Positions 5,482 to 64,000 of a stretch of DNA of 64,000 nucleotides are shown here, one piece after another. The stretch covers positions 1 to 64,000 of the forward strand of contig JAKMXF010000335.1 in assembly GCA_024704765.1 (NCBI GenBank), in the 5' to 3' direction. Source of the stretch: Oopsacas minuta. Lineage: Eukaryota; Animalia; Porifera. Below the pieces are notes generated by a model. It worked only from the letters and a program-made list of their open reading frames with translations. It was not told the DNA's origin and did not search any database. Every line of letters starts with the position of its first letter. Positions within the stretch are counted from its first letter, which is position 1. The translations under genes and the position numbers were made by a program.

Positions 5482-7506
5482 TCAGACATCTGGTGTTGTA
5501 TCAATCAAATCAAATGTATTATTATTTGAATTTCCTTGAGCAGTTTGTGAATCTTTGACTTCTTCTTGGATAATGCTCTCAGGCTGTTTTTGACATGGAA
5601 TATTTCCTCTGACAATTGGGATTTCTTCTAACAAATCTGGTAATTGTGGGAACTCGACATTCTCCTGTGGAATAGTTTCCATTTTGTTCGCATCCTCTTG
5701 GAATAATTCGTTATCCTGAGATTCATTTGGGTCTGAATTTTGAAAATTAGCCAGAGCATCAGGATCAGCTGATAACACTGCTCCTTCGAATAATTTCATT
5801 TTATCTTGTATAAAACTATCACTTTGTAATTGATTAGTTGAGTCAACAGAAAAATCACGATCCATCTCTAACGAAGACGTTAAGCCGAGACCAAAACTTG
5901 GTTCATCAAAAGCATCTTTCGAGCAAGCAGCTGATTTTATTTCAATTAAACCAATTTCCTTAGCATTTAACGATTCTTCCATTGATTTAGCAATGAACAT
6001 AGCTTCACGTTGAGTATGATTCCTATTACGATAGTTAACTAAATCATTCAAGACATCAATAATAAGTTGTCTATCTCTTTGATCTGCTTTAATATTCTCA
6101 GGTATCTGTAGATTGAGTAGAATATGGTTTACTTTATGCGCTAGACTCAATGCCATTAGCCCTGCTATCCTAATGTCATTCCCTCGTAGATCTAGAACTT
6201 CCATGCATTTACTCTCTGCTAGAACCTCAGCAATAGCAATAGATCCCTCGCATGTAATCTTACTATTCCTAAGACCTAATTTAGAGAGTGATGTATTCGC
6301 TATTAGTGCAGGTTTGAGCATTTGAATACCCGTATTACCGACATTATTACCGCTTAAACTTAGCGTTCTAATAGAACTCAAATTCAATAGAATAATAGCT
6401 ACATCTTCAATACCAGCCTCAGTTATGCTATTATTCGTAAGAAATATAGAATTCATACACATAACGTCCGGATTTTGACATAATGACATAGATAAGTGTT
6501 TTAACCCTCTATCTTGTATAGCATTATCACGTAGATCAATCACCTCAAGGAGAGGATTATTACGTAGTATACTAGCTATATGTAAGGCATCTTCTGTATT
6601 GAGATTATTACGACCAAGATACAACTCTTTTAGATTTGTATTGAATTTTAATGCTGCTAGTAATATCATTATCCCTTTGCCAGATAAGCCATTACCTTCT
6701 AAATGCAATACTTGTAGTAAACAATTAGCTCGAATACACCGTAAGAACATAGGAAGAGAGAAATTATCAATCGCACAGTATCCGATATCAAGATGCTCAA
6801 CTGAATTTGTTTTTCGCATCATTCTACCTAGATGTATCCAGCCTCGTATCTTTATCTTAGGATTATGAGCTATAACTATTACTTTAGTAGATTGATAGTA
6901 CTCTATCATCTCGCAGATTGATATGAACGTATCATCCTCAAGGGAGCACTTAGAAACGTTAATTATGTTAGACTTAACGTGACGGAATACTTCATCAAGA
7001 GCGTCGATTTGTTTTGAATCTAGTCTTATTCCTCGTAAATGCAGCTCTTCTAACGGATCAAATATTGAATCCATTGAATCTAATTGATCGAGTAGTTGTG
7101 CACTAGCTCGTATCTTTAAGTCAATACAAGTTTGTGTGTATTTAGCAATTACTTCTTCGATTGTTGAGAAATTTTCCGTTTTCCATCTCTGTGGATCAAC
7201 AAACTCCATAGACAGAGCTTCTTCATTGAATCTTAACTTTCTTCGTTTCACATTGCTTTCAGATATTCTCTCATACTCACTTGATGTTTTCGTATCCGGG
7301 TTATTAGAGTTATTAGTAATTGGATCAGGATTAAGAATTAGTCTTCTGAATGAACCGATTGATGAGATAATATCATCTAGATTCTTGCTGTCACAGTTGG
7401 ATTCTGGTACAGCAGTATCTTCCTCAGATGAGGGAGGGATATGACCTGCTGGTTCGTCAGGTAATGCAGGGATAGTAACGTTATAGCTCTGAGATTGTTG
7501 AGCCAT
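5482..7506 (-). CDS. PPP1R37: Protein phosphatase 1 regulatory subunit 37 (RI-type LRR protein), intronless
   Basis: Recognisable blocks EMIEYY, IRGW...MMRK, LHLE...LSG...LLxALKxNxNLKELYL, ITCEGSIAIAE, GLMALSLAxKVNH; candidate PP1-docking RVxF-like RKLRF near the N-terminus. Confidence 0.9.
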   Translation of the reverse strand: MAQQSQSYNVTIPALPDEPAGHIPPSSEEDTAVPESNCDSKNLDDIISSIGSFRRLILNPDPITNNSNNPDTKTSSEYERISESNVKRRKLRFNEEALSMEFVDPQRWKTENFSTIEEVIAKYTQTCIDLKIRASAQLLDQLDSMDSIFDPLEELHLRGIRLDSKQIDALDEVFRHVKSNIINVSKCSLEDDTFISICEMIEYYQSTKVIVIAHNPKIKIRGWIHLGRMMRKTNSVEHLDIGYCAIDNFSLPMFLRCIRANCLLQVLHLEGNGLSGKGIMILLAALKFNTNLKELYLGRNNLNTEDALHIASILRNNPLLEVIDLRDNAIQDRGLKHLSMSLCQNPDVMCMNSIFLTNNSITEAGIEDVAIILLNLSSIRTLSLSGNNVGNTGIQMLKPALIANTSLSKLGLRNSKITCEGSIAIAEVLAESKCMEVLDLRGNDIRIAGLMALSLAHKVNHILLNLQIPENIKADQRDRQLIIDVLNDLVNYRNRNHTQREAMFIAKSMEESLNAKEIGLIEIKSAACSKDAFDEPSFGLGLTSSLEMDRDFSVDSTNQLQSDSFIQDKMKLFEGAVLSADPDALANFQNSDPNESQDNELFQEDANKMETIPQENVEFPQLPDLLEEIPIVRGNIPCQKQPESIIQEEVKDSQTAQGNSNNNTFDLIDTTPDV

Positions 7507-9791: not shown

Positions 9792-11090
9792 CTAAACATA
9801 TTTATCCACAAATCTAGCTACTCTCTTATAAGCATCAATACAAGGAGATAATCCTGAGTAATAGAAGTAACCATGGAACATCTTCTCTCCCTCATAATAC
9901 TCAACACTAACTCCACTCACTTCTAACCTTTCCTTAAACAGTAATCCCTCACTAAGTAGAGTATCATATTCTGCTGTTATAAGTAGTGTAGGGGGAAGTA
10001 CAGAGAAATTTGATTGAAATAGCAACGTTGCATATGGACTTAATAGCGTATCAGCATATGAGGAGTATTTCTCAATTAACTCGGTGGGAGGTTGCCATTT
10101 TGATTCTACTATTAAATGAGGGAATTCATTTAATCTTTCCTGATAATTAGCACTCAATTTGGCTATGCTATGATTCAGAATATAAGGTATTAATTCTGTA
10201 TTTCCAATCAAAGCAAGTGACAAGTAAATAGCTATTAATTGAGGGGAAGACATTCTACCATTATTTGTGATAGGGATATAAGAATCTAGTTGTAAATTAA
10301 TCCACTGTAATCTAGGGTATACTGGTATAAGTCCTCTAAGAGGAGCGTGTCGTGTGTCTAGTCCCAATTCGTGCCACTTGAATGCCACATACACGGCGGC
10401 ATGACCACCAAAACTATCTCCCATTATAAATACGCGTTTACTATCAACGCCAAATTCATTACTTCTATAAACAACCTGTTTAACAACTGTAAGACAATCT
10501 TCTTGTGGTTGTGGGAAGCATACCTCTGGACTCTTACGATAGTTAGGCACGAATATCTTGACTTTCATATCATCAGCTAACTGACGTAATGAATAATCAG
10601 ATAGTTTGGGACTCTGCATAATACCCCCTCCCCCATGGAAGTAGAAAACTACAGGGCTATTGGGGGTGTCAATTAGCGTGTTTGGGGTATATACATATGT
10701 AACTATACCGTCTATAAGTAAATCTTGTACTCGTACAGGGTATTCTAATTGTATATCAGTATATTTAACTGTTGTATTAGATTCTAATTGATTTAACATA
10801 TATCTCAAGCTAGTGTTGAATTCTACTATCCCTGTGTATGATAATGTATTAGCAATAGATACCATGGATGTTATGATGTGAGGGACTGCGTATAGGAAGA
10901 ATTTCAGTGAGCAGGTCATGTCCCTATGCTCATTTGTTAGGTCACATGAAGCTATCCAGAAGTGAAGTGTTACTAGAGATATGAATGCTATTAGTGTGGA
11001 TATGAATGTTAGTTTGTATATATTGGTCAGGGTTGTGTTGTGTTGATTTTTAGGAGATTTGAGTGTGGGCTTGGTTTCTTTTGGATCCAT
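9792..11090 (-). CDS. Hormone-sensitive-lipase family alpha/beta hydrolase, AADAC/NCEH1-like, with N-terminal membrane anchor
   Basis: HGGG oxyanion motif, nucleophile GDSFG, AEYD and FHG triad positions, N-terminal hydrophobic helices. Confidence 0.88.
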   Translation of the reverse strand: MDPKETKPTLKSPKNQHNTTLTNIYKLTFISTLIAFISLVTLHFWIASCDLTNEHRDMTCSLKFFLYAVPHIITSMVSIANTLSYTGIVEFNTSLRYMLNQLESNTTVKYTDIQLEYPVRVQDLLIDGIVTYVYTPNTLIDTPNSPVVFYFHGGGGIMQSPKLSDYSLRQLADDMKVKIFVPNYRKSPEVCFPQPQEDCLTVVKQVVYRSNEFGVDSKRVFIMGDSFGGHAAVYVAFKWHELGLDTRHAPLRGLIPVYPRLQWINLQLDSYIPITNNGRMSSPQLIAIYLSLALIGNTELIPYILNHSIAKLSANYQERLNEFPHLIVESKWQPPTELIEKYSSYADTLLSPYATLLFQSNFSVLPPTLLITAEYDTLLSEGLLFKERLEVSGVSVEYYEGEKMFHGYFYYSGLSPCIDAYKRVARFVDKYV

Positions 11091-14006: not shown

Positions 14007-15289
14007 TTACAGATATGAGAATGCCTGTAGTTCGTTATGATCTTTATGGTCTACTGTTATAATAGTGAATACATCATATACTGCTATTCCTCTTAGATCA
14101 GTGAATTCTCCTGGAGCTGATCCTTCTTTACCGATTTTAGTAATCAGTTTCCTTTCATTAGAGAATATCTTGACTTGAGAATAACCTGAATCTGCTAGTA
14201 TTATAATTAGTTGTTGATCCATACTAAAGAATCAAACCTCATTCAACATATCTTTGTGTATAATACATCTAGTCAGTCTGCCTTGTTTGGAGAAAGCTTG
14301 TATAGGATAATCTGAGTCAGTGAAACAAACGTATACTTCATCTTTAGCTAGTGATATATCTCTGATAAAAGTGTTATCTTGCTTGAATTGAGTGATTAGA
14401 GATATTCTCTTTTCTTCATTCATCTCAGAGGTTAGGACTGTTAACTTCATATTCCTATATTCACCCACATAGATATGTGTATTGTCATTACAGATACATG
14501 ATAGTTGATACTCGTAAGTTTTATGAGATTCCCTCTTGAGGGTAGATTTGTTGAATTTAACTATTCTATTTCTACACTGTACTAATATAGAGTTATGTAG
14601 AATGAGGATATTCTCTGGATCAGCCATTACTTCATCTTTGAAAGAATTAACCCATTCTCCATTTCTAGAGAATATCTGTACTCTGTGTATGGAATCTGTC
14701 ACATAAATCTCATCATTAATAGAATCAATAACTATACCACATGGATTATATAGTTGATTATCTTGCTTGCCTCTGTCACAAGAACTCCATTTCAGTTGAA
14801 TAGGAGTGTTTTCTTCAAACTTTACAATTCTCTGATCACAACTAAACAGTGTATTGATACTCTCTCTCAACTCTCTCACTTTACAATTCAGATTGATAAA
14901 AGGGATATCTATATTCATTTCTCTTTTCACTGACTCTATTGCTTCAGGTATCTTGTCAAGAGGATTGGGTAGAGATGGGTCTAAGTCTTGGAAGAGTTTT
15001 TCCAGTTCACTTTTACGTTTGTTTATCTCTTCTATCTGTTTATTGATTTCATTTCTTCTCTTGTTCATCCTTTGATAGCTTCATCCCAGATACCTTCCAA
15101 TTCCCTGATAATCAGCTGAGTCTTGTCTTCAATGAGCTCTTTCATTTCTTCACTGACTCTCCTCACGAGTGACTTCTTGCTATCAATCACTTCTCTCAAT
15201 GTATTCATTCTGTCCTGTAGCTTGTTAGGGACTGGCATCAAGCTAACAGGTTCACAGGCTGGATTCTCGTTGTTTGGTGCAGTAGCCAT
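14007..15289 (-). pseudogene. Coiled-coil + NHL/beta-propeller gene, disrupted
   Basis: MATAP... coiled-coil N-terminus; LYNPCGIVID, HRVQIFS and GKEGSAPGEFTDLRGIAV NHL repeats; -1 frameshift at ~15070, in-frame TGA at 14232-14234, further stop at 14007. Confidence 0.8.
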
Positions 15290-15974
15290 TTCTTAGTTTA
15301 CTATACAATTAGTATAATACTGATATTATTTAGAAAGTGGATATTTCCTGTTCTCGCTCGCTTATGCATATTGAATATCTAATTACTAAATACACCATCT
15401 ACTAGTGGTCACAGAATTATCTACAGTAAACTCTCGTTATAACCAAAGATGGATCTAGGTTCAACCATCAGGTGTGGGGTTTTGACTTCAAGCTTACTGC
15501 TTATACTCTCCCCTCAGGGGGTTTTAAGAAATATTCTCAGGGTTTTTGTATTCAGATTCATAGTTCAAGGAGGTAACCTCCCTCTGAGGGGTGGCTAGAT
15601 AAATACTGGTTATAACAATGTGATAAATTACTTTCTCTAGCTGGAATTAATTCACTTCACTCCGCCTTATTACAAAATGAATCCAAGCAACGAGCATAGT
15701 TACATAACGATATTACACATGATACGCTACTAATGAATGCTAAAAAATTGGGTACTTCGCAAAAATATATCCAATTATATAAATTTATGTATATTGTATA
15801 CTACTAAATGGATGGAAAAGAAGTAGTAAGTAAATTTGAAAAATAGTGTTCAATCGCAATGGGCTGACATATAACTCGTAATCTACGTTGACTAAGATTC
15901 CAATATCTGAAGTTCAAATATGAACTATAAATTGGAATACAAATACATTGAGAGTAACAAAGAAATAACAACAA

Positions 15975-17422
15975 ATGATGAACTATAGAATAATTTGCTT
16001 TGTTGCACTATTTGCTGCTACATACGCACAATTCCCTCAACTCTCCAGGAGCTACTCGTTTGAAGCAACAGCAACAATAATTGTAACAAAGAATACATTA
16101 TCTACAACAATATACACACAGTATAATGTGGCTAGTGATAGTACACGTCTCCTTGTATTGGAGGATACACTCACAGAGAGAGGATCCTCGAGAACTACTA
16201 TTGTAAGTCTGAATGATGAAGCGTCGTATAACATAGGTATATTTGGCCATTGCAATATGCATCCAATCACAGGGAATCCAAATAGGCCATTCAGGAACCC
16301 TGCAAACCCTTGGGCGATCTTCAATCAGGCAGTAGAAAATCCATTGGGTACATTCACTTACATAGATGGAAATGTTACACTAGTGCTCAGGATAATTGAC
16401 GGACTCCCGGCAATGTATATCGAGACAACAAAACTCAACACAACTGGCAATGAAACATCTGAATTATCGATAATGATAAACAGATTCAATAACCAGAAGC
16501 CTCGATTTTCCACATTCACGATACCAGAAACATGTTCAAACTTCATATGTAAAGCATGTTTTGACCAAAACATGACAAGAACAACAACTGGTACTCTTAG
16601 AACAAGTATAGTACAACAAGAACAACAACTGGTACTCCTAGTACAAGTAATAGCACAACAAGAACAACAACTGGTACTCCTAGCACAAGTAATAGCACAA
16701 CAAGAACAACAACTCCTAACTGCACAAGGTACCCTAAACAGTAATAGCACAACAAGAACAACAACTGGTACTCCTAGCACAAGTAATAGCACAACAAGAA
16801 CAACAACTGGTACTCCTAGAACAAATAGCACAACAAGAACAACAACTGGTACTCCTACCACAAGTAATAGCACAACAAGAACAACAACTGGTACTCCTAG
16901 CACAAGTAATAGCACAACAAGAACAACAACTGGTACTCCTAGCACAAGTAATAGCACAACAAGAACAACAACTGGTACTCCTAGAACAAATAGCACAACA
17001 AGAACAACAACTGGTACTCCTAGCACAAGTAATAGCACAACAAGAACAACAACTGGTACTCCTAGAACAAATAGCACAACAAGAACAACAACTGGTACTC
17101 CTACACAAGTAATAGCACAACAAGAACAACAACTGGTACTCCTAGAACAAATAGCACAACAAGAACAACAACTGGTACTCCTAGAACAAATAGCACAACA
17201 AGAACAACAACTGGTACTCCTAGCACAATTACTAATACCTTGAGAACAACCAGTAGGACCCCTAGACTGACTACTACGAGATTTAGCAGTACCTCAACAC
17301 GCTCTAGTACATCCACGGGTTCTTCTTCTACTGCTGCCCCCATTAGCTCTGCTGGCACTATACTCAGCAGTTTCCTAATAGTATTATTTGCCCTGGTTGT
17401 ATTACTCCTATTTATGGCGTAA
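15975..17422 (+). CDS. Ependymin-related (EPDR-like) protein A: signal peptide, EPDR-like domain, long Thr-rich stalk, GPI-anchor-type tail (tail out of frame in this sequence)
   Basis: Signal peptide then FPQLSRSYSF, YNVASD, NPWAIF, GLP, FSTFTIPETCSNFICKACF. The hydrophobic tail SSAGTILSSFLIVLFALVVLLLFMA lies in the 17240..17422 frame. Confidence 0.65.
16568..17228 (+). repeat. Coding minisatellite, about 16 units of 39/42 bp
   Basis: Unit ACAAGTAATAGCACAACAAGAACAACAACTGGTACTCCTAGC (TSNSTTRTTTGTPS) alternating with a 39-bp TNSTTRTTTGTPR variant; indels at ~16608, ~16713-16740 and ~17104. Confidence 0.95.
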
Positions 17423-17559
17423 CCGGAACTGTATTTACTAGTGTTTGGTGGTTTGTATTTTACATTTTAATCTATAAGTCATATTTGCATGCAATCATAT
17501 GTGTATGGTTATTTTGTGTGATAAATTACATAAGTATTCTCAACAACTAAATATATATT

Positions 17560-17770
17560 TGCTTATGAGCATCCGAGTTCGCTCGCTCAAATTCTCACAT
17601 GTATATTTAAAGTAAATAAACAATTGAAATATATATTAATCAATTCATTTTTCAAATTTATACTTTGCTAAATTCGAGGCACGAAGTGCCGAGTCTCATG
17701 CGAACATAAAACGTCTGCAATCCGTGCACGCGAGCAAGCGAAGCGGTTCGTCTACATTATGATACTAGTA
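17560..17770 (+). mobile_element. Helitron-like fragment
   Basis: GC-rich stem-like segments (GAGGCACGAAGTGCCGAG; GCGAGCAAGCGAAGCGGTTCG) followed by a CTAGT end at ~17765. Confidence 0.45.
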
Positions 17771-17985
17771 CAAAAAGTATTACACTAGTGTGACATAATA
17801 GGTTGGTTTCTTGTATGGCAGCATACATATACTTACTAATTTGTCTGGTTTATGAGAGTATATTACTCAGTGTAATTGCATTATATTCACTTGCAGATCG
17901 TAATTGATAATTATTTACCAATTCCGAAGCATAAAAACTATAAATAATATACATTACTTTTAGAAATACCAAGAGTCAATACAAG

Positions 17986-18693
17986 ATGAAGCGTCTAATA
18001 ATCTGCATATTCACACTGTTTGCTGTTACCAACACACAATTCCCTCCACTACCGCCCAGCTTTTCGTTTAAAGGAGATGGTGATTTTTTTGTATTTTTCG
18101 CTCCACGGCCCTCTTACCCAATAGCTAGGTATAATGTAGCTAATGATGTTACAAGAGGACTACAATTTGTAGATATTAGTATACTTCTACCTGGATCACC
18201 CATTAATGTATATGGTATTTATAGTGTAAATGATAACGCTACTTATATTGATCAAGATGGTGTGTGTTCAGCCAACACTTTTAGTGATCTAGTTCCTTTT
18301 CTGGCCGATTCAAATACTTGGGATCTGTTTGCAACAGCTAACGAGAATCCAGCTGGGCAATTCACTACACCTTCTTATAACGCATCAGTTATAATAGAAG
18401 ATGGACTACCTGTACTATTCGTTGATGGGGGTGGTAGTGAAGGTGTATCAGTAATTGACATAACCAACTAGAGGAACGAAACACCTCCATTTTCTACCTT
18501 CACGTTACCTGAGGTATGTTCCAACTCCGTTTGTGATTCATGTTATGCACCTACCACAGACAGCCCTACATCCATTCCCAGCTCTGCTGGTAATATAGCT
18601 AGCAGTTTGTTACTATTGCTAGCTACTCTTTTCTACAGTATAATTATCACCAACAGCATTATACTAGTGTGTCCATATATGTGTGTATTCTAG
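17986..18693 (+). pseudogene. EPDR-like paralog B with one in-frame TAG (18469-18471)
   Basis: Signal peptide, PRYNVANDVTRGLQ-type block, NTWDLF, GLPV. The frame continues past TAG as RNETPPFSTFTLPEVCSNSVCDSCY...SSAGNIASSLLLLL. Confidence 0.75.
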
Positions 18694-19559
18694 GTTATAA
18701 GATATACTCTATATGTGTCCTTATTTGTTACCGTCAGCATGAAATTCCTTTCATTATAGGGCCCACATTACCATGTTTGGGAAATTTCACGTTGACAACG
18801 CCACAACGCAGGATTGTGACGCATTCTATTCTCAAAAGTGTTCGGAAGATGGTGAAGTGACTCATCAAATTGCTGGAAATTTAATGCTGATTATGAATAT
18901 CACAATGAATAATGGCTAACACTCGATTACACAAGTCAGATAGTTTTGAAAAATACTTCCCCCTGTCGGCCAGTCGGCCTTTGGGGTGATAACAAACGAA
19001 AGCTATCACCCATTGACTATTATCAGACATTTTCTATGTTCAAAGATGTATACCTTGCAAAAAGTCGCTATTAGAATTATTGCTCAAAATGGTACCAACG
19101 TCCAACCAACCCTTCTGGCTCATGGCCCATAATGCAGTTACTGTATTTGGATAATTACTTTTACGCATAGGTAGAAATTAGAGAATTTGTTAGCATATAA
19201 CTAGGTTTGATAGAACCAGATTGTAAATCTTTTTATAGCTGTCAGAGATATTAAAGTTCAACAGCCTTAGAGTTATAAATGATATATCGATGCCCGGACA
19301 ATGCCTCAGGGCTGGATATGCCACTGAAGTACATTGTATTAGTAGCCCATGACAGATATTATTCAAGTTTATGAGTCACAGACTTGTATTTATAGCAAGT
19401 CTGGGAAGCATAAAATACTTACAATTATAGCATCTAAATATTAGATGATTTGTAAATGCTCACTGCCAAATATGCCAATGATAACAAAATAACACATGCT
19501 ATATTATTCTTGAGGTGTTTAAGAGTGAGGGCCTCGTACAAATTGTAACTGGTAATTGC

Positions 19560-19814
19560 TGTAGTTTCAAATACGCAACTACCTCAACTCTGAGCCAGCT
19601 TTCCATTTTACGGACCTGGTTTATATATTATAGGTCACCTAACCCTTTCCCAAAGCATTTGCCTTGGTATAATGTAGCTAACGATATCACGAGCGGACTG
19701 CGATTAGAAAATTCCAATGGCGAGTGTTTGAGAAACTCTTTCAGAGAACAAAATCCCTTCCTAGTCAATTCAAATCAGCCAACTATAACATTCTCTATTT
19801 CAACACTTGGATAA
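19560..19814 (+). pseudogene. EPDR-like paralog C, degraded fragment
   Basis: LPWYNVANDITSGLRL matches the YNVANDVTRGLQL block of B and D; the remainder is deleted or frameshifted. Confidence 0.6.
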
Positions 19815-20132
19815 ACAGTTGCTTCTACTAGATCTATGAAATACCAATCACAATAAACAGCTACAGGAATACAGTTGTAAGTAATGCTATATGTTATGTT
19901 CTTGCAGCATTTTAACAAGTACACAGATATAATAACTGATAATTAGATAGCCATTTGCAGGTGGATAATGTAAGGGCAGTTAGTAACTGATATCCTATTG
20001 AGATAACTATCATCAGTAATCAGTAGTACCGCCCCCCTGTTAGTTAATACTATTGTGTTGATTTTGTGAACAGAATTAGTTCACTAACAGTTTCCCTATA
20101 AATGTGTATAATGATGAGATGATAGCTGTAGC

Positions 20133-20215
20133 CAGGGTTTTATATTTGATTCAGTATTAATCTTTAGGAATACTGGGGGGATCCCAGGGCACACCCCGAT
20201 CTGTATAAAACCCTG
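20133..20215. mobile_element. 83-bp MITE
   Basis: Perfect 12-bp TIR CAGGGTTTTATA / TATAAAACCCTG; flanks CTGTAGC / CTATAGC form an imperfect duplication. Confidence 0.7.
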
Positions 20216-20489
20216 CTATAGCTGAATATTTATCTTCGAGTTATCCTGAAATATACTCAATTATATAATCAAATTTAACTGCATGGAAAGGGCCATTTAT
20301 TCTTTGTTTCGAACTTTGACAAAAATTCAAACAATATTTTCAGAATTCTCATCAACTCACAAATTTTAATCCCTTGAAAGCCACTCAATCCAACCTCTTT
20401 GTGTAATTGGAACATTCACGAATTTTGCCAATTCTCTTGAGAGTTGAAATTATACTCCCTGTACAAATATTATTCCTAAACAATAATTA

Positions 20490-21377
20490 TTGTACTTTCT
20501 ACAGGAAGATAATAGTATAAACAGTCTAGCATGTTTTTGCTTATTCGCAGTGCTTGCTGCTACAAACGCGCAATTACCTGAACTATCAGCTAGCTTTTCA
20601 CTTGAAGGAACTGCTGTATATACTATTGCAGGTACCGTGATCACTGTACCTCGGTATAATGTAGCTAACGATGTTACAAGGGGGCTGCAATTACTAGACG
20701 TTAGTGTAATTTACATTGGATCACCAACTGATGCTGTCGGTATATATAGTGTTAATGATAACTCAACATACAGAGAATAGAATGGTGTATGCTCTGATGA
20801 ATCTTTCAGCAAACTAATACCCTTCCAAGCCGATTCAAATACCTGGGATCTGTTCAATGGGTCTACAGAAGAACCAGCCGGAACATTCTCTGTTTCAACA
20901 GCTACTGCTAGCTACGAGCTAATAATATTGGATGGAGTACCTGCAGTATTTACAGTAATAAATACAGATTCTGATACTGCATTAATCATTATACACAGCT
21001 TTAGAAACGAGGTACCGGCATTTTCTAGATTCATATTACCTGATGCATGTTCCGATCGCATTTGTGCATCATGTTATGACCCTAGTGTTACAACCATCAC
21101 TACAACTACCATGGGACCTACTAGCCCTAGTACTACAACCATCACTACAACTACCATGGGACCTACTAGCCCTAGTACTACAACCAGCACCACTAGCATG
21201 ACCACAACTAGCACGGCTACCACTACTACAACTAGCACGGCTACCACTACTACAACTATGTCTACTACAACTATGATTCCTACTACTGAGGATTCTGCTC
21301 TTAACTCAGCTGATACGATAGCTAGTAGTTTGTTACTAATGTTGACAACCCTTACTATGTTACTCCTATTTTATTAA
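20490..21377 (+). pseudogene. EPDR-like paralog D with one in-frame TAG (20778-20780), Thr-rich stalk and GPI-type tail
   Basis: The two track ORFs are in the same frame, separated by TAG where paralog B has Gln (YIDQDGVC vs YRE*NGVC). FSRFILPDACSDRICASCY, duplicated TTITTTTMGPTSPS, hydrophobic C-terminus. The listed start is TTG; no in-frame ATG precedes the signal peptide. Confidence 0.75.
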
Positions 21378-28100: not shown

Positions 28101-31100
28101 TTTCCACGTCAACCGAAAATGTGTTTTGTACCATCGCTAATAGAATTAATACGTACTTTACATAATACGCGATATAAAATTAGTTCCTATTGAAGATTAG
28201 AGTTGCTGGAAAACTGTATAGTAGTAAGTTTGACCAAAACTATTTGACGAATAGTTAGGTATGTTAGGCTGTGGAGCAAAAATGCAGTGTTAATCGTATA
28301 GTAGTTCTATCTGAGTGGTTTATTACTTCATCCGAACAGTTCAATATTTGGCGAATAGTTGATAAAACTTAATATTCGTTTGAGTGTCTATAATTCAAAG
28401 GGCTTTTCCTCCCAGAAATCTAGGTTGCTAGATGCCCTCCAGCAACATATTTGGTGATTCTGGGTGATGTGAATCATGGGAAGTGAGGGGATATTTGTAC
28501 ATGGCAAGTTGGCAACCTAGGTTGCTGGTTAGAAAATTCAAATTGAAATACACTTGGTAAAGTTAAACGATATCCAATTTTCGATTTCACAAAGGGTATT
28601 TATGCACGAGTTTGACAATGAGACCAAGGATGGATAGCTTAATAGTTAATTCTCATTTTCGATTGTTGCATTGTGTTATGATGTCAGCATTGAATTTGAC
28701 ATTTTATCTGTATACAGTTTGAACCTCGTTAATACGTACACCAAGGGACCATCGAGATTTGTACTCCCTATCCGGAGTAAGTATTAACAGGAGTAAAAAC
28801 AATTGAATATCCATTGTACGGACTCAAATTGTGTAAAATTCTGTTCGTCTTTTAACCGGAAATTCGTATTAAATAGATTCGTATTAACGAGGTTTCACTG
28901 TATTTACATGATTTATCATATGATATACTATATTTTCACGCCTTTAGGCTTACGTATACTTTTAATTATTTAATAATTTGGTTCTAACGTGTAATGATTA
29001 TCCATTGGGTAGAAACATGACCCACATACCTGAGTTTTGTCTCCTAGTCTATTGGTTTGAGATTTTTTAGAAGTTAAGGAGTTGGTTAAGGATAATAAGT
29101 TTTCCGCCAACTCTAAATTAGCTGAGTTTTGCCTTATCCGACAAAATTTTTCAAATAACCTGAAATTGAATAGAGCCTCCAATACTCAGTCAAACCTGCT
29201 TAAAGGCCACCACAGTATAACTGTCACCTGCAAATAACAGCCACTCAAATAATGTCCCATGGTACGATTTTAATATAAATCTACCTTTGTATAGCGTCCA
29301 CTTTTGGCCAGACTCTTGGTTGGCCATTATAGACAAGTTTGACTGTTTACAAATTTTCAAACTATTTACTTATGCATACTAGTTAAGACAGCTCAAAAGA
29401 ATTGTAGACAGTTTTCTTCTGACACACAACAATAATGTATCCTGTGTTGTCTAGTGCTATATCACGTGGGTAACTGAACTCCCCGAGACCCTAACCATTC
29501 TCCCTAAACTTGTGTATCTGTTCTCCTTCTTGATTGAATATGTACACACAATGATTGTTGTAGTCACTCATAACTATGTTGTAGTCACCGTCTATGTCAA
29601 AACAGTATGGATAGCTTGTTTGTTTGCCATCATATCTAGTTATCAGTCTGTTGGTTAGGATGTGATCTGAATTGGATACAAACATAAACGGATCATTATA
29701 ATCTAGCACCAATACTTTGTCTCTTGTAACCTTAACGTCACGAGGATGGTTAAACGAGCCTATTCCTAGCATTGAATGGAACTTGAGTTCTTGAGTTAAG
29801 ATTTGAACTCTTTTATTATCATAATCACATACGTACACATTGTTATTTCTAGCAGAGACATCTAGACCGCGTGGATTGTAGAACTTAGCTTCTCCAGTCC
29901 CGCCACTACCAACACTCTTGATTAGTTTCCCTTCTAACTCATAGCTATTGATGCAATTACCATACCTTTGTGAAACAAACACTTTATTATGAGATATACA
30001 GATACCTCTTGGACCATACATGTTCTCGCTGAACATGAAGAGATAGTCTCCGTTACAGCTAAATACTTGTACACGATTGTTGTCCATATCCGTTATATAA
30101 ATGTTTCCAGTTTGGTAATGCACTGTTATACTTCCTGGAAAGTTCAGTTCTCCTGGAGCTTTCTTGTCAGAAGATGTCTTACAGCAGTAAACAATGGGCA
30201 TTTGTATAGCCTTGTAGTCAGGTAAAACAGGCTTCACTTGAGGAGAGAAGGTGCGGGTGGGAGATATGTTAGTCTGACGGTTAAGCTTAATACTCCCTAG
30301 CTGTTGTATGTCAGTCTCGAATTGATTATGCCATTCAAATTCAATACAACTGTCTGTCTCAGCTGTTAGTTCTGTTATCTTCTTGTTGATTAATGATATA
30401 ACTCCATCTAGAGTGTCCTTAAGTTCGTTATTTGTTAATGTATCTGAAGTAATCGATTTATTTGAATTCAAAGTCTCAACCATTTTATTTATTTTCTGAG
30501 TTTTGCTATTACAATTTTTCTCTATCTCATCAATGTGAGAGAGGAGATTACTCTCTCTGAGTTGTAGAGCTTCACGTGACCTCTTGAAGCAGTCTCGAAT
30601 CTTTCTGCTACTCTTTTATTTGTTCGATAAAGTTTCTGTTCATTTCTACGCTAGCCATTTTGTATATTCACATCTGCTTAGGTTTTGAAAGCTTAACTAT
30701 TAATACCCTCATACTGTATATGAGCTCAAATATCATGTAATAATAGCCTATAAAGCTTATTGCTTTATTTGGTGGTCAAATTAATTTACTTTTTTGTGCA
30801 GCTCTTATACGGAAATGTCCTAATGGCATGGACGATGTGCGACGTCCTTACATCCGCCCGTCCGCGATGTTCTGAGAAATCTAATGGTTAGATTGATATG
30901 AAAATTCGTAAATGACTACATTTTGCACCTTGGGTATGACTTTTGAATTAATCAGATATAATTAATTTGTTGTTTTTATGAGCATAAAGAAAACAAATAT
31001 TTCTAATCACAAAATATACGAGACCTGCTCTCGACGGCTAACAGGGGTAACTAAGTACGCTACATCCGAATTTAGAATTTACAAGTTTCTCAAATGTAAA

Positions 31101-49257: not shown

Positions 49258-49938
49258 TTACACATCCGATAACAAGAGCATAGCTATAGTAGATAGTAAT
49301 AATAGCAAGCTGCTAGTTATACCAACTGCTGAGCTGTGGTAACATGAATTACAAGTATATTCGCTACATATTTCTGGTAGTGAGAATGCAGAGAATGGAA
49401 GTGTTCCATTTTTATATGTAGCCATATTTACTACTACTATTAATTCTTTAGAGTCTATCTTAACGGAAGCAGCGTAGATAACTGGTAATCCATTCTCTAT
49501 AACGACTCGAGCTGTGAAATTGGTCATAAAAAGAATGAAAGTTCCTTCAGTACTTTCTATAGCATTAGCGAATATATCCCAAGTATTGAAGGAAAATGGG
49601 AAGAGAGATGGTATGGAAAATTGTTTACTAATACATTGATCATCTGTAATACTAAAAGTTTGATTATCATATTGACTAGCGAAATAGAAACTATCAATAA
49701 TTATTCCTGATACGATAGCAGTTGAGTTGAGAATTTGTAGCCTTCTCGATACGTCGTGAACTACATTATATCGCGGAAATTTGATTGTCATATTTCCGAA
49801 AGAGAACGTTGCTGATCCCTGAAACGAAAAACTCTCAGAGAGTTGAGGAAATCGCCCATTTGTTACACGAATCAACGTAAAAAGTAGTATAAATATTATT
49901 TCATTCATCTTATAATTATGAAATTTGAAGAATAACAT
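49258..49938 (-). CDS. EPDR-like paralog E, intact, no stalk, GPI-type tail
   Basis: Signal peptide (likely start MNEIIF at 49908), FPQLSESFSF, PRYNVVHDVSRRLQ, NTWDIF, GLPV, FSLPEICSEYTCNSCY, SSAVGITSSLLLLLSTIAMLLL. Confidence 0.8.
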   Translation of the reverse strand: MLFFKFHNYKMNEIIFILLFTLIRVTNGRFPQLSESFSFQGSATFSFGNMTIKFPRYNVVHDVSRRLQILNSTAIVSGIIIDSFYFASQYDNQTFSITDDQCISKQFSIPSLFPFSFNTWDIFANAIESTEGTFILFMTNFTARVVIENGLPVIYAASVKIDSKELIVVVNMATYKNGTLPFSAFSLPEICSEYTCNSCYHSSAVGITSSLLLLLSTIAMLLLSDV

Positions 49939-50339
49939 ATTTAATATACAGAATGTGTACTGAATCTTTTCTTTCTACAGTTCAACAGACCATAATTTTC
50001 ATTTCTATGTATAAGAAAATTCAATATCTTTGAAAAGATGAAATGACCTAGAACGAACCCATACATATATACTTAGTTGCATTTAAGCCATTTATTCAAC
50101 TTAACATATACATAATAACCTTATAAGTACAAGATAAATCTCTTAGAATTAGCTGAATGACATGAACGCTTTACTTTTGTTTAATTGTGTGTAATTTGAC
50201 TTTCTCAAATAAAATATAGACTTATTATCTAGACAAATTCTAAAACTTTATTAACAACTTGTGCTTACCCTCCATTATGAATAATTAACATTAATTATCA
50301 GAATTATCCATTGAATTGGATCGTTATTAGTGCTAGCAA

Positions 50340-51096: not shown

Positions 51097-52365
51097 TTAG
51101 AAGAATTGGAGACATCCAGTATCCTTCTGACACACAACTATAATATGTCCAGTATTGTCTAGCACTATTCCAAATGGATTAACGAACTCCCCGATGCCCT
51201 GACCATTCTTCCCAAACTTATGTATCTGTTCTCCCTCCTGATTGAACACATACACACAATGATTGGTGTAGTCACTCATAATTATGTTATACTCTCTGTC
51301 TATGTCGAAAGAGTATGAACAAACTACTTGCTTGTCACTACCATGGGTTATCAATCTATTCATTAGTTTGTGATTTGAGTTAAACACGAAAATACATGGA
51401 TCACTGGAATCTAGTACCAATACTCTGTCTCGTGAAATCTTAACGTCACGTGGCTTGCTGAACAAGCCAATTCCAAGCATAGAATGAAACTCGAGATCTT
51501 GAGTTAAGACCTGAACTCTGTTATTATTATAATCACATATATAGAGATTGTTAGTTCTCGCAGAGGTGGTTAGACCATGTGGACTGCTGAATTGAAGTTC
51601 TCCGCTACCTTGAGCGCCAGCACTCTTGACTAGTTTCCCATCTAGTTCATACTCACACACACAACTACTACCATGCTGTGCAACGAACACATTATTTTCA
51701 GATATACAAATTCCTACTGGAAAACATACCTTCTCACTAAACATGAAGAGGTAGTCTCCGTTACAGGTAAACACTTGTATACGGTTGTTGGCCATATCTG
51801 CTACGTAAATATTCTCAGTTTTGTAATCCACTGCTATACATCTTGAATTGTTTAGTTCTCCTGGAGATTTTAGGCTGGACGATTTCTTGCAGCAGTAATT
51901 AGTAGGCAGCTGTTTGGCCTTGTAGTCTGGAATAACAGGCTTTACTTGAGGAGAGAAATTGCGGGTTGGAGGTATGTTAGTTTGATCGTTAAGTTTTATA
52001 TTTCCTAACTGTTCGATGTCTTTCTCGAATAGATAATCCCACTTAAATTCAATGAAACTGTCTGTCTCTGTTGTTAGTTCTGTTATTTTAGAATTGATTA
52101 ATGTTATAACACCTTCTCGTGTGTCAGTTACCTTATTTGATTTAAGAGTATTTGAACTGATAGATTTAATGTTGTTTAGAGATTCTAACAATTCTTGTAT
52201 TTCTTTAGTGTTTTTGTTATAGTCATCCTCAATTTGATCAATACGAGAGAGGAGGATCCTCTCTCGTATTTGTAGAGCTTCATGCGATCTCTTAAAGCTG
52301 TCTTGAATATTTTTTCGACTGTCATTTATCAGTTCTGCGAAATTTGCTTTTTGATTGCTAGCCAT
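51097..52365 (-). CDS. Coiled-coil + NHL-repeat (tripartite-motif-like, RING-less) protein, intact
   Basis: 422 aa; about six NHL repeats (NNRIQVF, FSSPHGL, DYNNNRVQV, GKNGQGIGEFVNPFGI). Confidence 0.88.
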   Translation of the reverse strand: MASNQKANFAELINDSRKNIQDSFKRSHEALQIRERILLSRIDQIEDDYNKNTKEIQELLESLNNIKSISSNTLKSNKVTDTREGVITLINSKITELTTETDSFIEFKWDYLFEKDIEQLGNIKLNDQTNIPPTRNFSPQVKPVIPDYKAKQLPTNYCCKKSSSLKSPGELNNSRCIAVDYKTENIYVADMANNRIQVFTCNGDYLFMFSEKVCFPVGICISENNVFVAQHGSSCVCEYELDGKLVKSAGAQGSGELQFSSPHGLTTSARTNNLYICDYNNNRVQVLTQDLEFHSMLGIGLFSKPRDVKISRDRVLVLDSSDPCIFVFNSNHKLMNRLITHGSDKQVVCSYSFDIDREYNIIMSDYTNHCVYVFNQEGEQIHKFGKNGQGIGEFVNPFGIVLDNTGHIIVVCQKDTGCLQFF

Positions 52366-61073: not shown

Positions 61074-62449
61074 CTTACAGCTAGTTAAAGTTATAATATA
61101 TTTCGTATTGGCAAGTTTTTGTCAACTTTCTCATTATTGGAATTTCAAACCAATCAGCCGCAGATGAAATTCCTAAGTCATAATAAAAACCAATAGCTTT
61201 CATAATTATATGTTAATTGCTACAACAGAACTCGGGGATAAGACGCACCACCTCGGGAATCAAAATAATATATACTTATTACTAACCGAAGTACGTTTTA
61301 ACCGAATATTCTTCTTATACAATTAGTACAAGAATAGAAATACGTTTTGGAGAAAAGTACGTAATAACCGAGTTCTACTGTGCGTATTTACGAAAATTTT
61401 CAAGTCTGTAATGTCACTGTAGGTTGTAAACCAAGGTTGTTCGATTTAAATATTTGATTTTAAATCACGATTAGAATCACCCTCAAAAAATCAAAAATAC
61501 ATAATTTCGTGATTTTACTGTGCTGACTAATACTATTACATGAGTATAGTGCCTCAGTTCTAAATTGGTTGACTTAGTATATATGCATATATTTCCAAAT
61601 AAATATCTGTGGTCTGTAAGTTCCCATTGAATTATAATATTTAGAACTCGGCACTATTAGAGCGACTGGCGGGGTAGAGAGATTTTCTCACCATTCGGGT
61701 TTGCTCATTCCGAAGTGAGGAATACGCTTGGAACGGCTAAAGCAGCTACTAAATACTCATTAATTGCTTGCCCATTCATTTTAAGGCGAATATTGAGGCT
61801 GCTTTCACTTGAAGACGAAATTGGCTAAAATGCCGTGTTATTAATCTATTAAATTAAATTATCTTTCACCAAATGTGGAACCAATCGATAATTTAATAAA
61901 AAGTAAAACAAAAAACATTCAAATATTATTGATTTTATATGATAAATGTATTATTAAAAAAATAACAATATTTGATATAATAAATACAAAACCTGGAGGG
62001 CGGGCGGTGAGACAAATACAATAAAATTTAACATTGCACAACTCACGAATTTTGTCTCCAATTGATTCACTTCACGATTACACAGTTTCAAGCACTTTTG
62101 AGAGAAGGCCAACACTTGGGAAGTCGAGGAAAATGGGACACTTATATACGGACGTATATTAGATCACAATTATAGTGTTTAGACTTGATTAGTGTGAACG
62201 AGAGCATTTTGGGCAAAGAAACATAAACACTCTAACAAATTGATTTATGCTCATTTGGTTCTGTTACAAAGTATGTTGCTGGAATGTATAGCTGAGTCCT
62301 ATAAAATTATAATGTTGTGTGAAAAGAAATAAAAATATACGTGAATCTTCATTGATATTATATTTGAATATATTTTGTTTTAACTATGTGTAGGTATTTA
62401 AGTGCATAAATACCAAATATTCAAAAAGTTTAATAATTTTCTGCTGAAA

Positions 62450-62820
62450 GTATCAAAATACTCTATTCACGATACTAATTTTCGTATTGGCAATGATTAT
62501 TAGTATCAATTCAGAAATCCCTCAACTTTCCGATAGCTTCCTTTAAGGGAAATGCAGAATATAGTACCGTAGAATCTACTATTAGCTTTCTACGTCTTGA
62601 TTTCGCTAGTGATGCTAGAAGAGAGACTACAATCCTACAATATGATATTTATCCATCCAATCTGAGACTACAATGTGATATTTTATCCATCAAATCTGAA
62701 ATGACTAGGAATTAGAGTATTAGCCTCGCTAGTGAAAAGGAGAATGAAGCTTAAATCAATACGGATGGTGTTTCCATTAACACTTCCTCTTACAGGGTTG
62801 TATTAGAGATGCGACGCTAA
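62450..62820 (+). pseudogene. EPDR-like paralog F, degraded
   Basis: TLFTILIFVLAMIISINS-EIPQLSDSF, then after a 2-nt deletion FKGNAEYSTVESTISFLRLDFASDARRE; later stops. Confidence 0.55.
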
Positions 62821-63673: not shown

Positions 63674-63808
63674 CAGCGGCACGTGGTCCACAGAGGACAG
63701 CAGGGATCCACGGATCAAAGAATTTGCATTACAGTCTATGGGAGGGATTCACAGAATGTGATATAATTAGCATAGGGGTCTACTGGCGAAAATGGTTGGG
63801 AACCGCTG
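63674..63808. mobile_element. hAT-type MITE
   Basis: CAGCGG termini, ...GGTTGGGAACCGCTG right end; flanks TACTATGC / TACTATAC (7 of 8 match). Confidence 0.7.
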
Positions 63809-64000
63809 TACTATACGTATGTCAGATATGAATTATACAATATTTGTTTTTATTAGCAGCTATTCTCTCCAGATGAACAGCATTATTAGACCAGTGATAA
63901 TATTATTGATTTTGTATTATACAACAAACGCAGAGTTCCCAATCCTCTCAAAAGAGTTATTCCTTTGAGGTAATAGCTAAATACGTAGTAAGAGATCTGA

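Follow-up and report, generated by a model that had tools for sequence, protein, structure and literature searches.

A probably glycosylphosphatidylinositol-anchored family of proteins with a predicted ependymin/LolA fold, apparently confined to glass sponges, in a decaying gene cluster of Oopsacas minuta

Ependymin-related proteins (EPDRs) are widespread in animals and their function is poorly understood; to our knowledge all those described are soluble or lysosomal. They include EPDR1/MERP and fish ependymin, and are represented in Pfam by PF00811. Here they are compared with a gene family found in a 64,000-nucleotide stretch of the glass sponge Oopsacas minuta (bases 1–64000 of contig JAKMXF010000335.1, assembly GCA_024704765.1), referred to below as the window. 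Like EPDRs, the family members belong to a eukaryote, carry a signal peptide and are glycoproteins about 200 residues long of the secreted kind; they are predicted to share the curved 11-strand antiparallel sheet and short C-terminal helices (Z-scores 13–15). Both groups expand through tandem duplication (PMC6280359). Unlike EPDRs, the family does not match PF00811, is without the N-terminal cysteine and its partner, closes its domain with an additional invariant CxxC, carries a C-terminal signal of the glycosylphosphatidylinositol (GPI) type in place of a soluble or lysosomal form, and includes versions with two to four domains; as a whole it appears limited to glass sponges. It is fairly likely that these genes form a glass-sponge-restricted, probably GPI-anchored family with an EPDR/LolA fold, which grows and dies by tandem duplication.

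A survey of EPDRs finds cysteines conserved at positions 23, 94 and 186 of its alignment, with a further one at 148 in profile 1, and makes no mention of glass sponges or of membrane anchors (PMC6280359). For EPDR1, disulfides Cys42–Cys172 and Cys88–Cys222 are described, as is the binding of fatty acids within a deep hydrophobic pocket (PMC6608618). The best structural match to the family is EPD-BCP1 of the demosponge Haliclona (PDB 8i34), a blue, carotenoid-binding extracellular sponge glycoprotein with two intramolecular disulfides. It forms a water-soluble heterodimer and, unlike the family described here, matches the ependymin family by sequence; identity between the two is 10–12%, and the family of the window has a different cysteine set and a membrane-anchor signal. 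LolB and mycobacterial LprG share the predicted fold (Z 9–12), and in both a lipid tether puts a domain with a hydrophobic pocket at the membrane for the receipt or handover of lipid. By analogy, the layout of the family resembles this lipid tethering. LolB and LprG are, however, anchored by N-terminal acylation rather than by a predicted C-terminal GPI, and they work in the periplasm or cell envelope without the disulfides or glycans of the family; the likeness is one of layout.

Copies in the window were located with a family profile against a six-frame translation, the pieces of copies B and D being searched and aligned separately and never joined across stops. The family genes are single-exon open reading frames (ORFs). 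A sequence-only reading of the window had described a tandem array of four copies, A to D, with a further copy E, a relic F, and a plan shared by A, B, D and E. All of these copies and relics were recovered, together with a seventh copy, G, which that reading had missed, and every motif block that it named (QFPxLSxSFSF, YNVAxD, NxWDxF, G(L/V)P and F..LP..C....C..C[YF]) is present in A, B, D and E alike. The sole intact copy in the window is E (49258–49938, minus strand), whose profile match covers 49261–49974 (E 1e-81). It has a signal peptide, a domain at 49339–49854, no stalk and a 27-residue tail YHSSAVGITSSLLLLLSTIAMLLLSDV, and its likely start is the second Met, at 49908. From either start, no identical protein is found in the public protein collection, so E may have been left without a model in the deposited annotation.

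A search of the whole O. minuta assembly (61.46 Mb in 365 contigs) gave 21 family matches at about 20 places. Besides E, the intact members are a tandem pair on contig C110, KAI6649072, KAI6660340, the divergent KAI6650300 and the two-domain KAI6659014. A HMMER scan of 1.84 billion representative proteins returned 46 matches at E <= 0.001. These come from O. minuta, from a Trinity transcript of Vazella pourtalesii and from ENA assemblies, namely the long-read ERZ25071281 (contigs up to 1.2 Mb) and more fragmentary contigs, the proteins of which cluster with the Vazella transcript; one match, to a Flavobacterium repeat protein, was discarded as spurious. Members from outside Oopsacas are 30–40% identical to the window copies and presumably come from other glass sponges. 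Judged by these matches, the family is apparently confined to glass sponges. Word-index protein searches with E and with the family alignment found almost nothing, and they missed known paralogues too. The public entries for family members are labelled ‘hypothetical protein’.

The family is modular. Domains occur head to tail in ORFs with two (KAI6659014, from O. minuta), three (P0006) and four copies (P0007), and in the forms P0010 and P0049 two domains are joined by a linker of Ser/Thr/Pro-rich or NPITFPP repeats. Intact relatives with linkers or with two to four domains are present in other glass sponges. Stalks before the tail occur in copies A, D and, in short form, B of the window, in P0027 and in the Vazella protein, which is transcribed and has an 11-residue TGTQPLPTTTPT spacer. 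Each domain has one to five NxS/T sites.

The fold of the domain was predicted by running AlphaFold2 with the family alignment on the domains of E and A. Both models are confident (E: predicted local distance difference test, pLDDT, 94.2; predicted template modelling score, pTM, 0.86; A: pLDDT 93.4, pTM 0.86) and are nearly all-beta, with 10–11 strands of at least three residues and short helices. The best Foldseek match was EPD-BCP1 (8i34; E 2e-6, TM-score 0.62, probability 1.00), followed by Helicobacter pylori LolA and then by human, mouse and frog EPDR1. VIA-align gave the same leading match, with Z 15.4 for E and 15.9 for A (root-mean-square deviation 3.0 and 2.5 Å over about 150 residues). 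EPDR1 followed at 13.6 for E and 14.6 for A (6e7o), then VioE at about 13.3–13.5, LolA at 12–14, LolB at about 11–12 and LprG at about 9–10. The alignments to EPDR, VioE, LolA and LolB span model residues 1–167 or more. Since two confident models best match EPD-BCP1 and EPDR1, an ependymin/LolA fold, as the sequence-only reading had proposed, is supported, and no other fold was indicated. We group the family with the LolA/EPDR structural superfamily and, within it, nearest to the EPDRs. The A domain model also aligns to one chain (9gjb_H, Z 8.7, rank 50) of the Gal/GalNAc lectin of Entamoeba histolytica; a LolA-like module would then be present in a further surface protein of a eukaryote.

The cysteines give a second point of comparison. 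In the numbering of the E domain, the invariant residues are C74, P124, C163, C168 and C171. The aligned ranges end at model residue 167 or 173, opposite EPDR1 residue 214. By arithmetic on these ranges, rather than by residue alignment, C163 (C169 in A) would plausibly lie opposite Cys210 and C74 opposite Cys113, while model residue 3 falls opposite Cys42. The third EPDR1 disulfide, which we take to be Cys113–Cys210 (alignment positions 94–186), would plausibly correspond to the mid-domain cysteine and the cysteine of the C-terminal F..P..C motif. Because C163 is placed opposite Cys210 in both models, this tail-anchoring disulfide looks retained; the N-terminal pair is absent, and the domain is closed by a new CxxC. 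The EPDR cysteine set at positions 23, 94 and 186 is thus incomplete in the family, and the features of an EPDR-like secreted glycoprotein are present: a signal peptide, with a hydrophobic N-terminus and an A-x-A/G-type site just ahead of QFP, N-glycosylation sites and a domain of about 170 residues.

The C-terminal tail is the feature that sets the family apart from soluble EPDRs. In about 30 of some 35 complete family proteins just 24–30 residues follow the last cysteine, and there is no stalk. A rule-based reading of 29 distinct tails, of 25–30 residues each, revealed a regular pattern: the residue after the last cysteine (C+1) is Y in 23 of the 29; 24 tails have S or N at C+2, 28 have S or G at C+3 and 25 have A, S or G at C+4. 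There follow about six small or beta-branched residues and then about 15 hydrophobic residues which run to the very end. The tails are nearly uncharged and have no basic stop-transfer residues. A GPI signal consists of small residues from the omega site to omega+2, a spacer of about 6–8 residues and a hydrophobic end of 12–20 residues, with no cytoplasmic residues beyond. The 29 tails fit this textbook layout, in proteins with an N-terminal signal peptide, and the genome encodes the two GPI transamidase subunits that were searched for, GAA1 (PF04114, E 2.5e-83) and PIG-T (PF04113, E 4.6e-36). The earlier suggestion of GPI-type tails is supported by these features, from which it is likely that the family is GPI-anchored.

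Of the other readings, the one that survives best is that the tails are ordinary single-pass transmembrane anchors, which would make the members type I proteins whose cytoplasmic part is minimal. In many members the uncharged stretch from C+4 to the end comprises 21–23 residues, which can span a membrane, and a final S/T-x-V is conserved in many paralogues, as would be unusual in a discarded signal. The truly hydrophobic core is, however, just 13–16 residues or so, with no basic residue behind it. Tail length is fixed at 25–30 residues, the small-residue triplet ahead of the core is kept at the spacing expected of a GPI signal, and the transamidase subunits are encoded in the genome. A transmembrane anchor is therefore possible and, on this evidence, rather unlikely.

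In contrast to E, the other copies of the window are damaged as assembled. Copy A (15975–17243, plus strand; profile match 15969–17240, E 3e-69) is a 422-residue ORF that ends without a hydrophobic tail. It encodes a signal peptide (15975–16028), the EPDR/LolA-fold domain modelled with AlphaFold2 (16029–16562) and a stalk repeat (16575–17228) of 16 units of 42 or 39 nt encoding TTRTTTGTPSTSNS. A Ser/Thr-rich end and a GPI-signal-like tail follow at 17240–17422, in a frame that differs from that of the domain; here SSAG is found at 17345, with a hydrophobic run up to 17419 and a stop at 17420–17422. Three of the units, which are 41, 52 and 41 nt long, throw the frame into a QQEQQLVLL reading. 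Of these, the first two offset one another (93 nt in total) and the third, at about 17080–17120, is uncompensated; as a result the ORF stops at 17243 and the tail is left in another frame. Across 16575–17228, two of the three frames are fully open, one Thr-rich and mucin-like and the other giving QQEQQLVLL, and single-base indels can therefore alter the protein without stopping it. An exact look-up of the A ORF on other contigs gave no match. An isolated fragment elsewhere (contig C2, 129137–129328; locus L020) is 83% identical to the region upstream of A and its first 50 codons, and meets a stop after 55 codons; it is a dispersed partial duplicate.

Copy B (17986–18690, plus strand) consists of a signal peptide, the domain, an in-frame TAG, the cysteine motif, a spacer of about 10 residues and a tail, and matches the profile in two pieces (17944–18468, E 6e-51; 18472–18690, E 4e-18). 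Its TAG, at 18469–18471, aligns to a Y/F of other members. In frame the tail overruns by about 20 residues and the canonical LLFSTV-stop is found in the +1 frame at 18623–18643; besides its TAG, B therefore has a frameshift in the tail. Copy D (20490–21377, plus strand) also matches in two pieces (20487–20777, E 6e-32; 20781–21374, E 3e-37). Its domain ends at 21077 and is followed by a Thr/Ser/Pro-rich stalk of about 72 residues (about 21078–21293), built from 45-nt and 24-nt tandem repeats, and by a GPI-signal-like tail to 21374. An ATA at 20517–20519 stands exactly where the paralogues begin MNSL, with no other in-frame ATG, and an in-frame TAG at 20778–20780 aligns to Q/D. The proteins of B and D are 41–53% identical, a divergence at which synonymous sites would be saturated for any dN/dS estimate.

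The remaining copies are decayed too. Of its N-terminal third, relic C (19485–19811, plus strand; weak profile match over the same range, E 0.1) keeps NTQLPQL-stop-ASFPF and YNVANDITSGL, which are split between two frames, and the remainder is lost. Relic F (62448–62712, plus strand; match over the same range, E 0.001–0.003) retains pieces of the signal peptide/N-terminal region and of the YNVA region, again in two frames. The start of copy G was matched at 63771–64000 (plus strand), and the whole-genome search extends it to contig position 64536; its signal peptide and domain lie in different frames, and it is annotated as KAI6647913.1, a 178-residue protein that begins at an internal Met.

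Two interspersed repeats lie within the array. One of about 150 bp between A and B (17600–17760) has dozens of copies on many contigs at 79–87% identity and is probably a short non-autonomous mobile element. A second, about 350 bp long, occupies 18735–19129, between B and relic C, and has about 10 copies at 71–81% identity elsewhere in the genome.

In the deposited annotation, the N-terminal part of B is joined to D in a single model, KAI6647903.1 (LOD99_8364, 418 residues). This model splices out both in-frame TAGs, and one of its introns deletes a conserved strand; it is a chimera of two broken genes. Two ways of rescuing the TAGs were considered and rejected. An alternative genetic code does not fit, as B and D have the TAG opposite different residues and a further, unrelated lesion is present in either gene. 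Nor do the TAGs lie within introns, since the TAG of D can be spliced out only at the cost of a conserved strand (the SxNDxxTY block), by the splice used in KAI6647903.1. B and D have two lesions apiece, of which three out of four are base substitutions, and are most simply explained as pseudogenes. No second, intact copy of the array was found in the assembly, where the search gave interspersed repeats and the one A-like 5′ fragment. No intact D protein was found in the public protein collection by a word-index search with the C-terminal piece of D, a method that missed known paralogues.

The cluster in the window is thus mostly decaying: A, B, D and G each have one or two lesions, and C and F are relics with several lesions. 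This bears on the proposal that the array displays its domain at different heights. Spacer lengths do vary as the sequence-only reading described, from none in E through about 10 residues in B and about 72 in D to more than 200 in A, and they are built from unrelated repeats. The copies and their shared plan likewise stand, but A, B and D cannot be taken as good copies, as none is intact as assembled. All three stalked copies of the array are disrupted, two of them by two independent lesions, and the stalkless tail is the rule in the family. Display at different heights is accordingly not upheld: the stalk series in the array is largely a pseudogene artefact, and height variation is a real but minor theme of the family which, in this array, is borne by broken copies.

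It could be argued instead that A, B, D and E are working genes which show one domain at four heights, with the breaks being artefacts of assembly or of alleles. The published O. minuta genome is a hybrid PacBio/Illumina assembly from several individuals (PMC10280926), so that reads of different individuals are mixed. The breaks in A are single-base indels within a 650-bp tandem repeat, which is hard to polish with short reads, and intact relatives with linkers or short stalks occur in other glass sponges, one of them transcribed. This explanation fits B and D poorly, where the lesions are independent and mostly substitutions rather than indels. The missing intact counterparts of the array and of D, the state of C, F and G and the stalkless norm of the family also argue against it, and it is improbable.

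Under the reading preferred here, that of a family of probably GPI-anchored EPDR/LolA-fold proteins, each protein would consist of a signal peptide, one to four domains of about 170 residues and a GPI signal one to three residues past the last cysteine. Each domain is predicted to be an N-glycosylated, disulfide-bonded half-barrel of the ependymin/LolA type. In the endoplasmic reticulum the tail would be cut off and a GPI anchor joined at the small-residue triplet, so that the domain with its hydrophobic pocket would rest immediately on the outer face of the plasma membrane bilayer. As the omega site adjoins the domain, the default member would sit on the bilayer and not on a stalk. There, by analogy with its structural relatives, the domain may bind a hydrophobic ligand or pass it on, candidates being lipids, fatty acids, sterols and carotenoids; EPD-BCP1 binds carotenoids (PDB 8i34). 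Tandem duplication would expand the family while copies decay, and at times domains would be fused in series or Ser/Thr/Pro-rich repeat linkers inserted.

Whether the family is also diversifying, as the sequence-only reading held, can be judged from one recent tandem pair of intact genes (C110:528039–531479, loci L002 and L003). The two have identical signal peptides and tails, and their 37 differences all fall in the domain, 30.5 being nonsynonymous and 6.5 synonymous. The resulting ratio of nonsynonymous to synonymous substitution rates (dN/dS) is 1.5 and is not significantly above 1. Values typical of purifying selection lie well below this. Gene conversion of the gene ends could contribute to the pattern. 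The pair gives a hint of diversification and falls short of establishing it.

Several points weigh against the preferred reading. At the level of sequence, membership of the ependymin family is not supported: E, A, the pieces of B and D and 28 family members gave no Pfam match even at E 10, the 28 members matching neither Ependymin (PF00811) nor LolA at E values up to 10, and no ependymin is among the 46 HMMER relatives. The N-terminal cysteine kept in all EPDR profiles (position 23) is absent from the family, and so is its partner at 148. Homology to EPDRs is argued from the fold ranking of the models and from one cysteine position, and ligand binding from a pocket predicted by analogy of fold. 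A signal-anchor-like single-pass helix with a cytoplasmic end of two or three residues is possible. The O. minuta members are known from genes alone, and assembly error could account for the frameshifts in A and G, since single-base indels may arise as artefacts in a PacBio/Illumina hybrid assembly from several individuals. A six-frame genome search with PF00811 was blank, and its controls were equally blank, so canonical ependymins may be present in the genome. Neighbours in a protein atlas that carry PF00811 scored no more than 0.82, which is a lead and not evidence.

A bolder version of the GPI-anchored reading would have glass sponges replace the soluble EPDRs by this modular family, with its one to four pocket domains, optional mucin-like linkers and fast turnover by birth and death. 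The family would form a polymorphic layer for recognition or adhesion, or for the exchange of lipids or sterols, on the syncytial tissue, and members would switch from an anchored to a secreted form, or back, as repeat length and reading frame change; this we consider improbable. Less likely still, and indeed highly improbable, is a bacterial origin of the domain, in which an ancestor of glass sponges took up a LolA-type gene and animal ependymin-related genes were not the source: H. pylori LolA is the only PDB entry that the family profile matches at the level of sequence (E 0.008, then 3e-4), no ependymin appeared in any sequence search and the Z-scores of LolA and VioE come within 1–3 units of those of EPDRs, but that match spans just 60 residues, the best structural matches of both models are eukaryotic EPDRs, the top one from a sponge, and family members carry a signal peptide along with N-glycosylation sites, as well as a mid-domain cysteine and C-terminal F..P..C cysteine that match the EPDR tail-anchoring disulfide.

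No GPI-anchored ependymin-like family was found in Pfam or in the literature searched on GPI anchoring of ependymin- and LolA-like proteins and on hexactinellid ependymins, in agreement with the view of the sequence-only reading that the architecture is not previously described. The family is probably a new, lineage-restricted and modular branch of the EPDR/LolA superfamily that is GPI-anchored. If this is true, a lipid-tethered and often serial fold would put a hydrophobic pocket at the membrane, and the family would be a natural test of the lipid-handling idea for the ependymin fold. Glass sponges would gain a candidate EPDR-type family of about 10–20 genes that are now unannotated or entered as hypothetical proteins, and one deposited gene model, KAI6647903.1, is flagged as a chimera.

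The DNA of the window has a G+C content of about 35%, and none of it has the look of human sequence. Among the family copies lie ORFs with NHL repeats or a beta-propeller, possibly TRIM-NHL-like, at 29494–30483, 51100–52365 and 14235–15289, all on the minus strand; the ORF 14235–15068 is without a Pfam match and looks similar to these NHL-repeat ORFs. Upstream lie ORFs for a short-chain dehydrogenase (1008–1778), a leucine-rich repeat protein (5485–7506) and an alpha/beta hydrolase (9795–11090).

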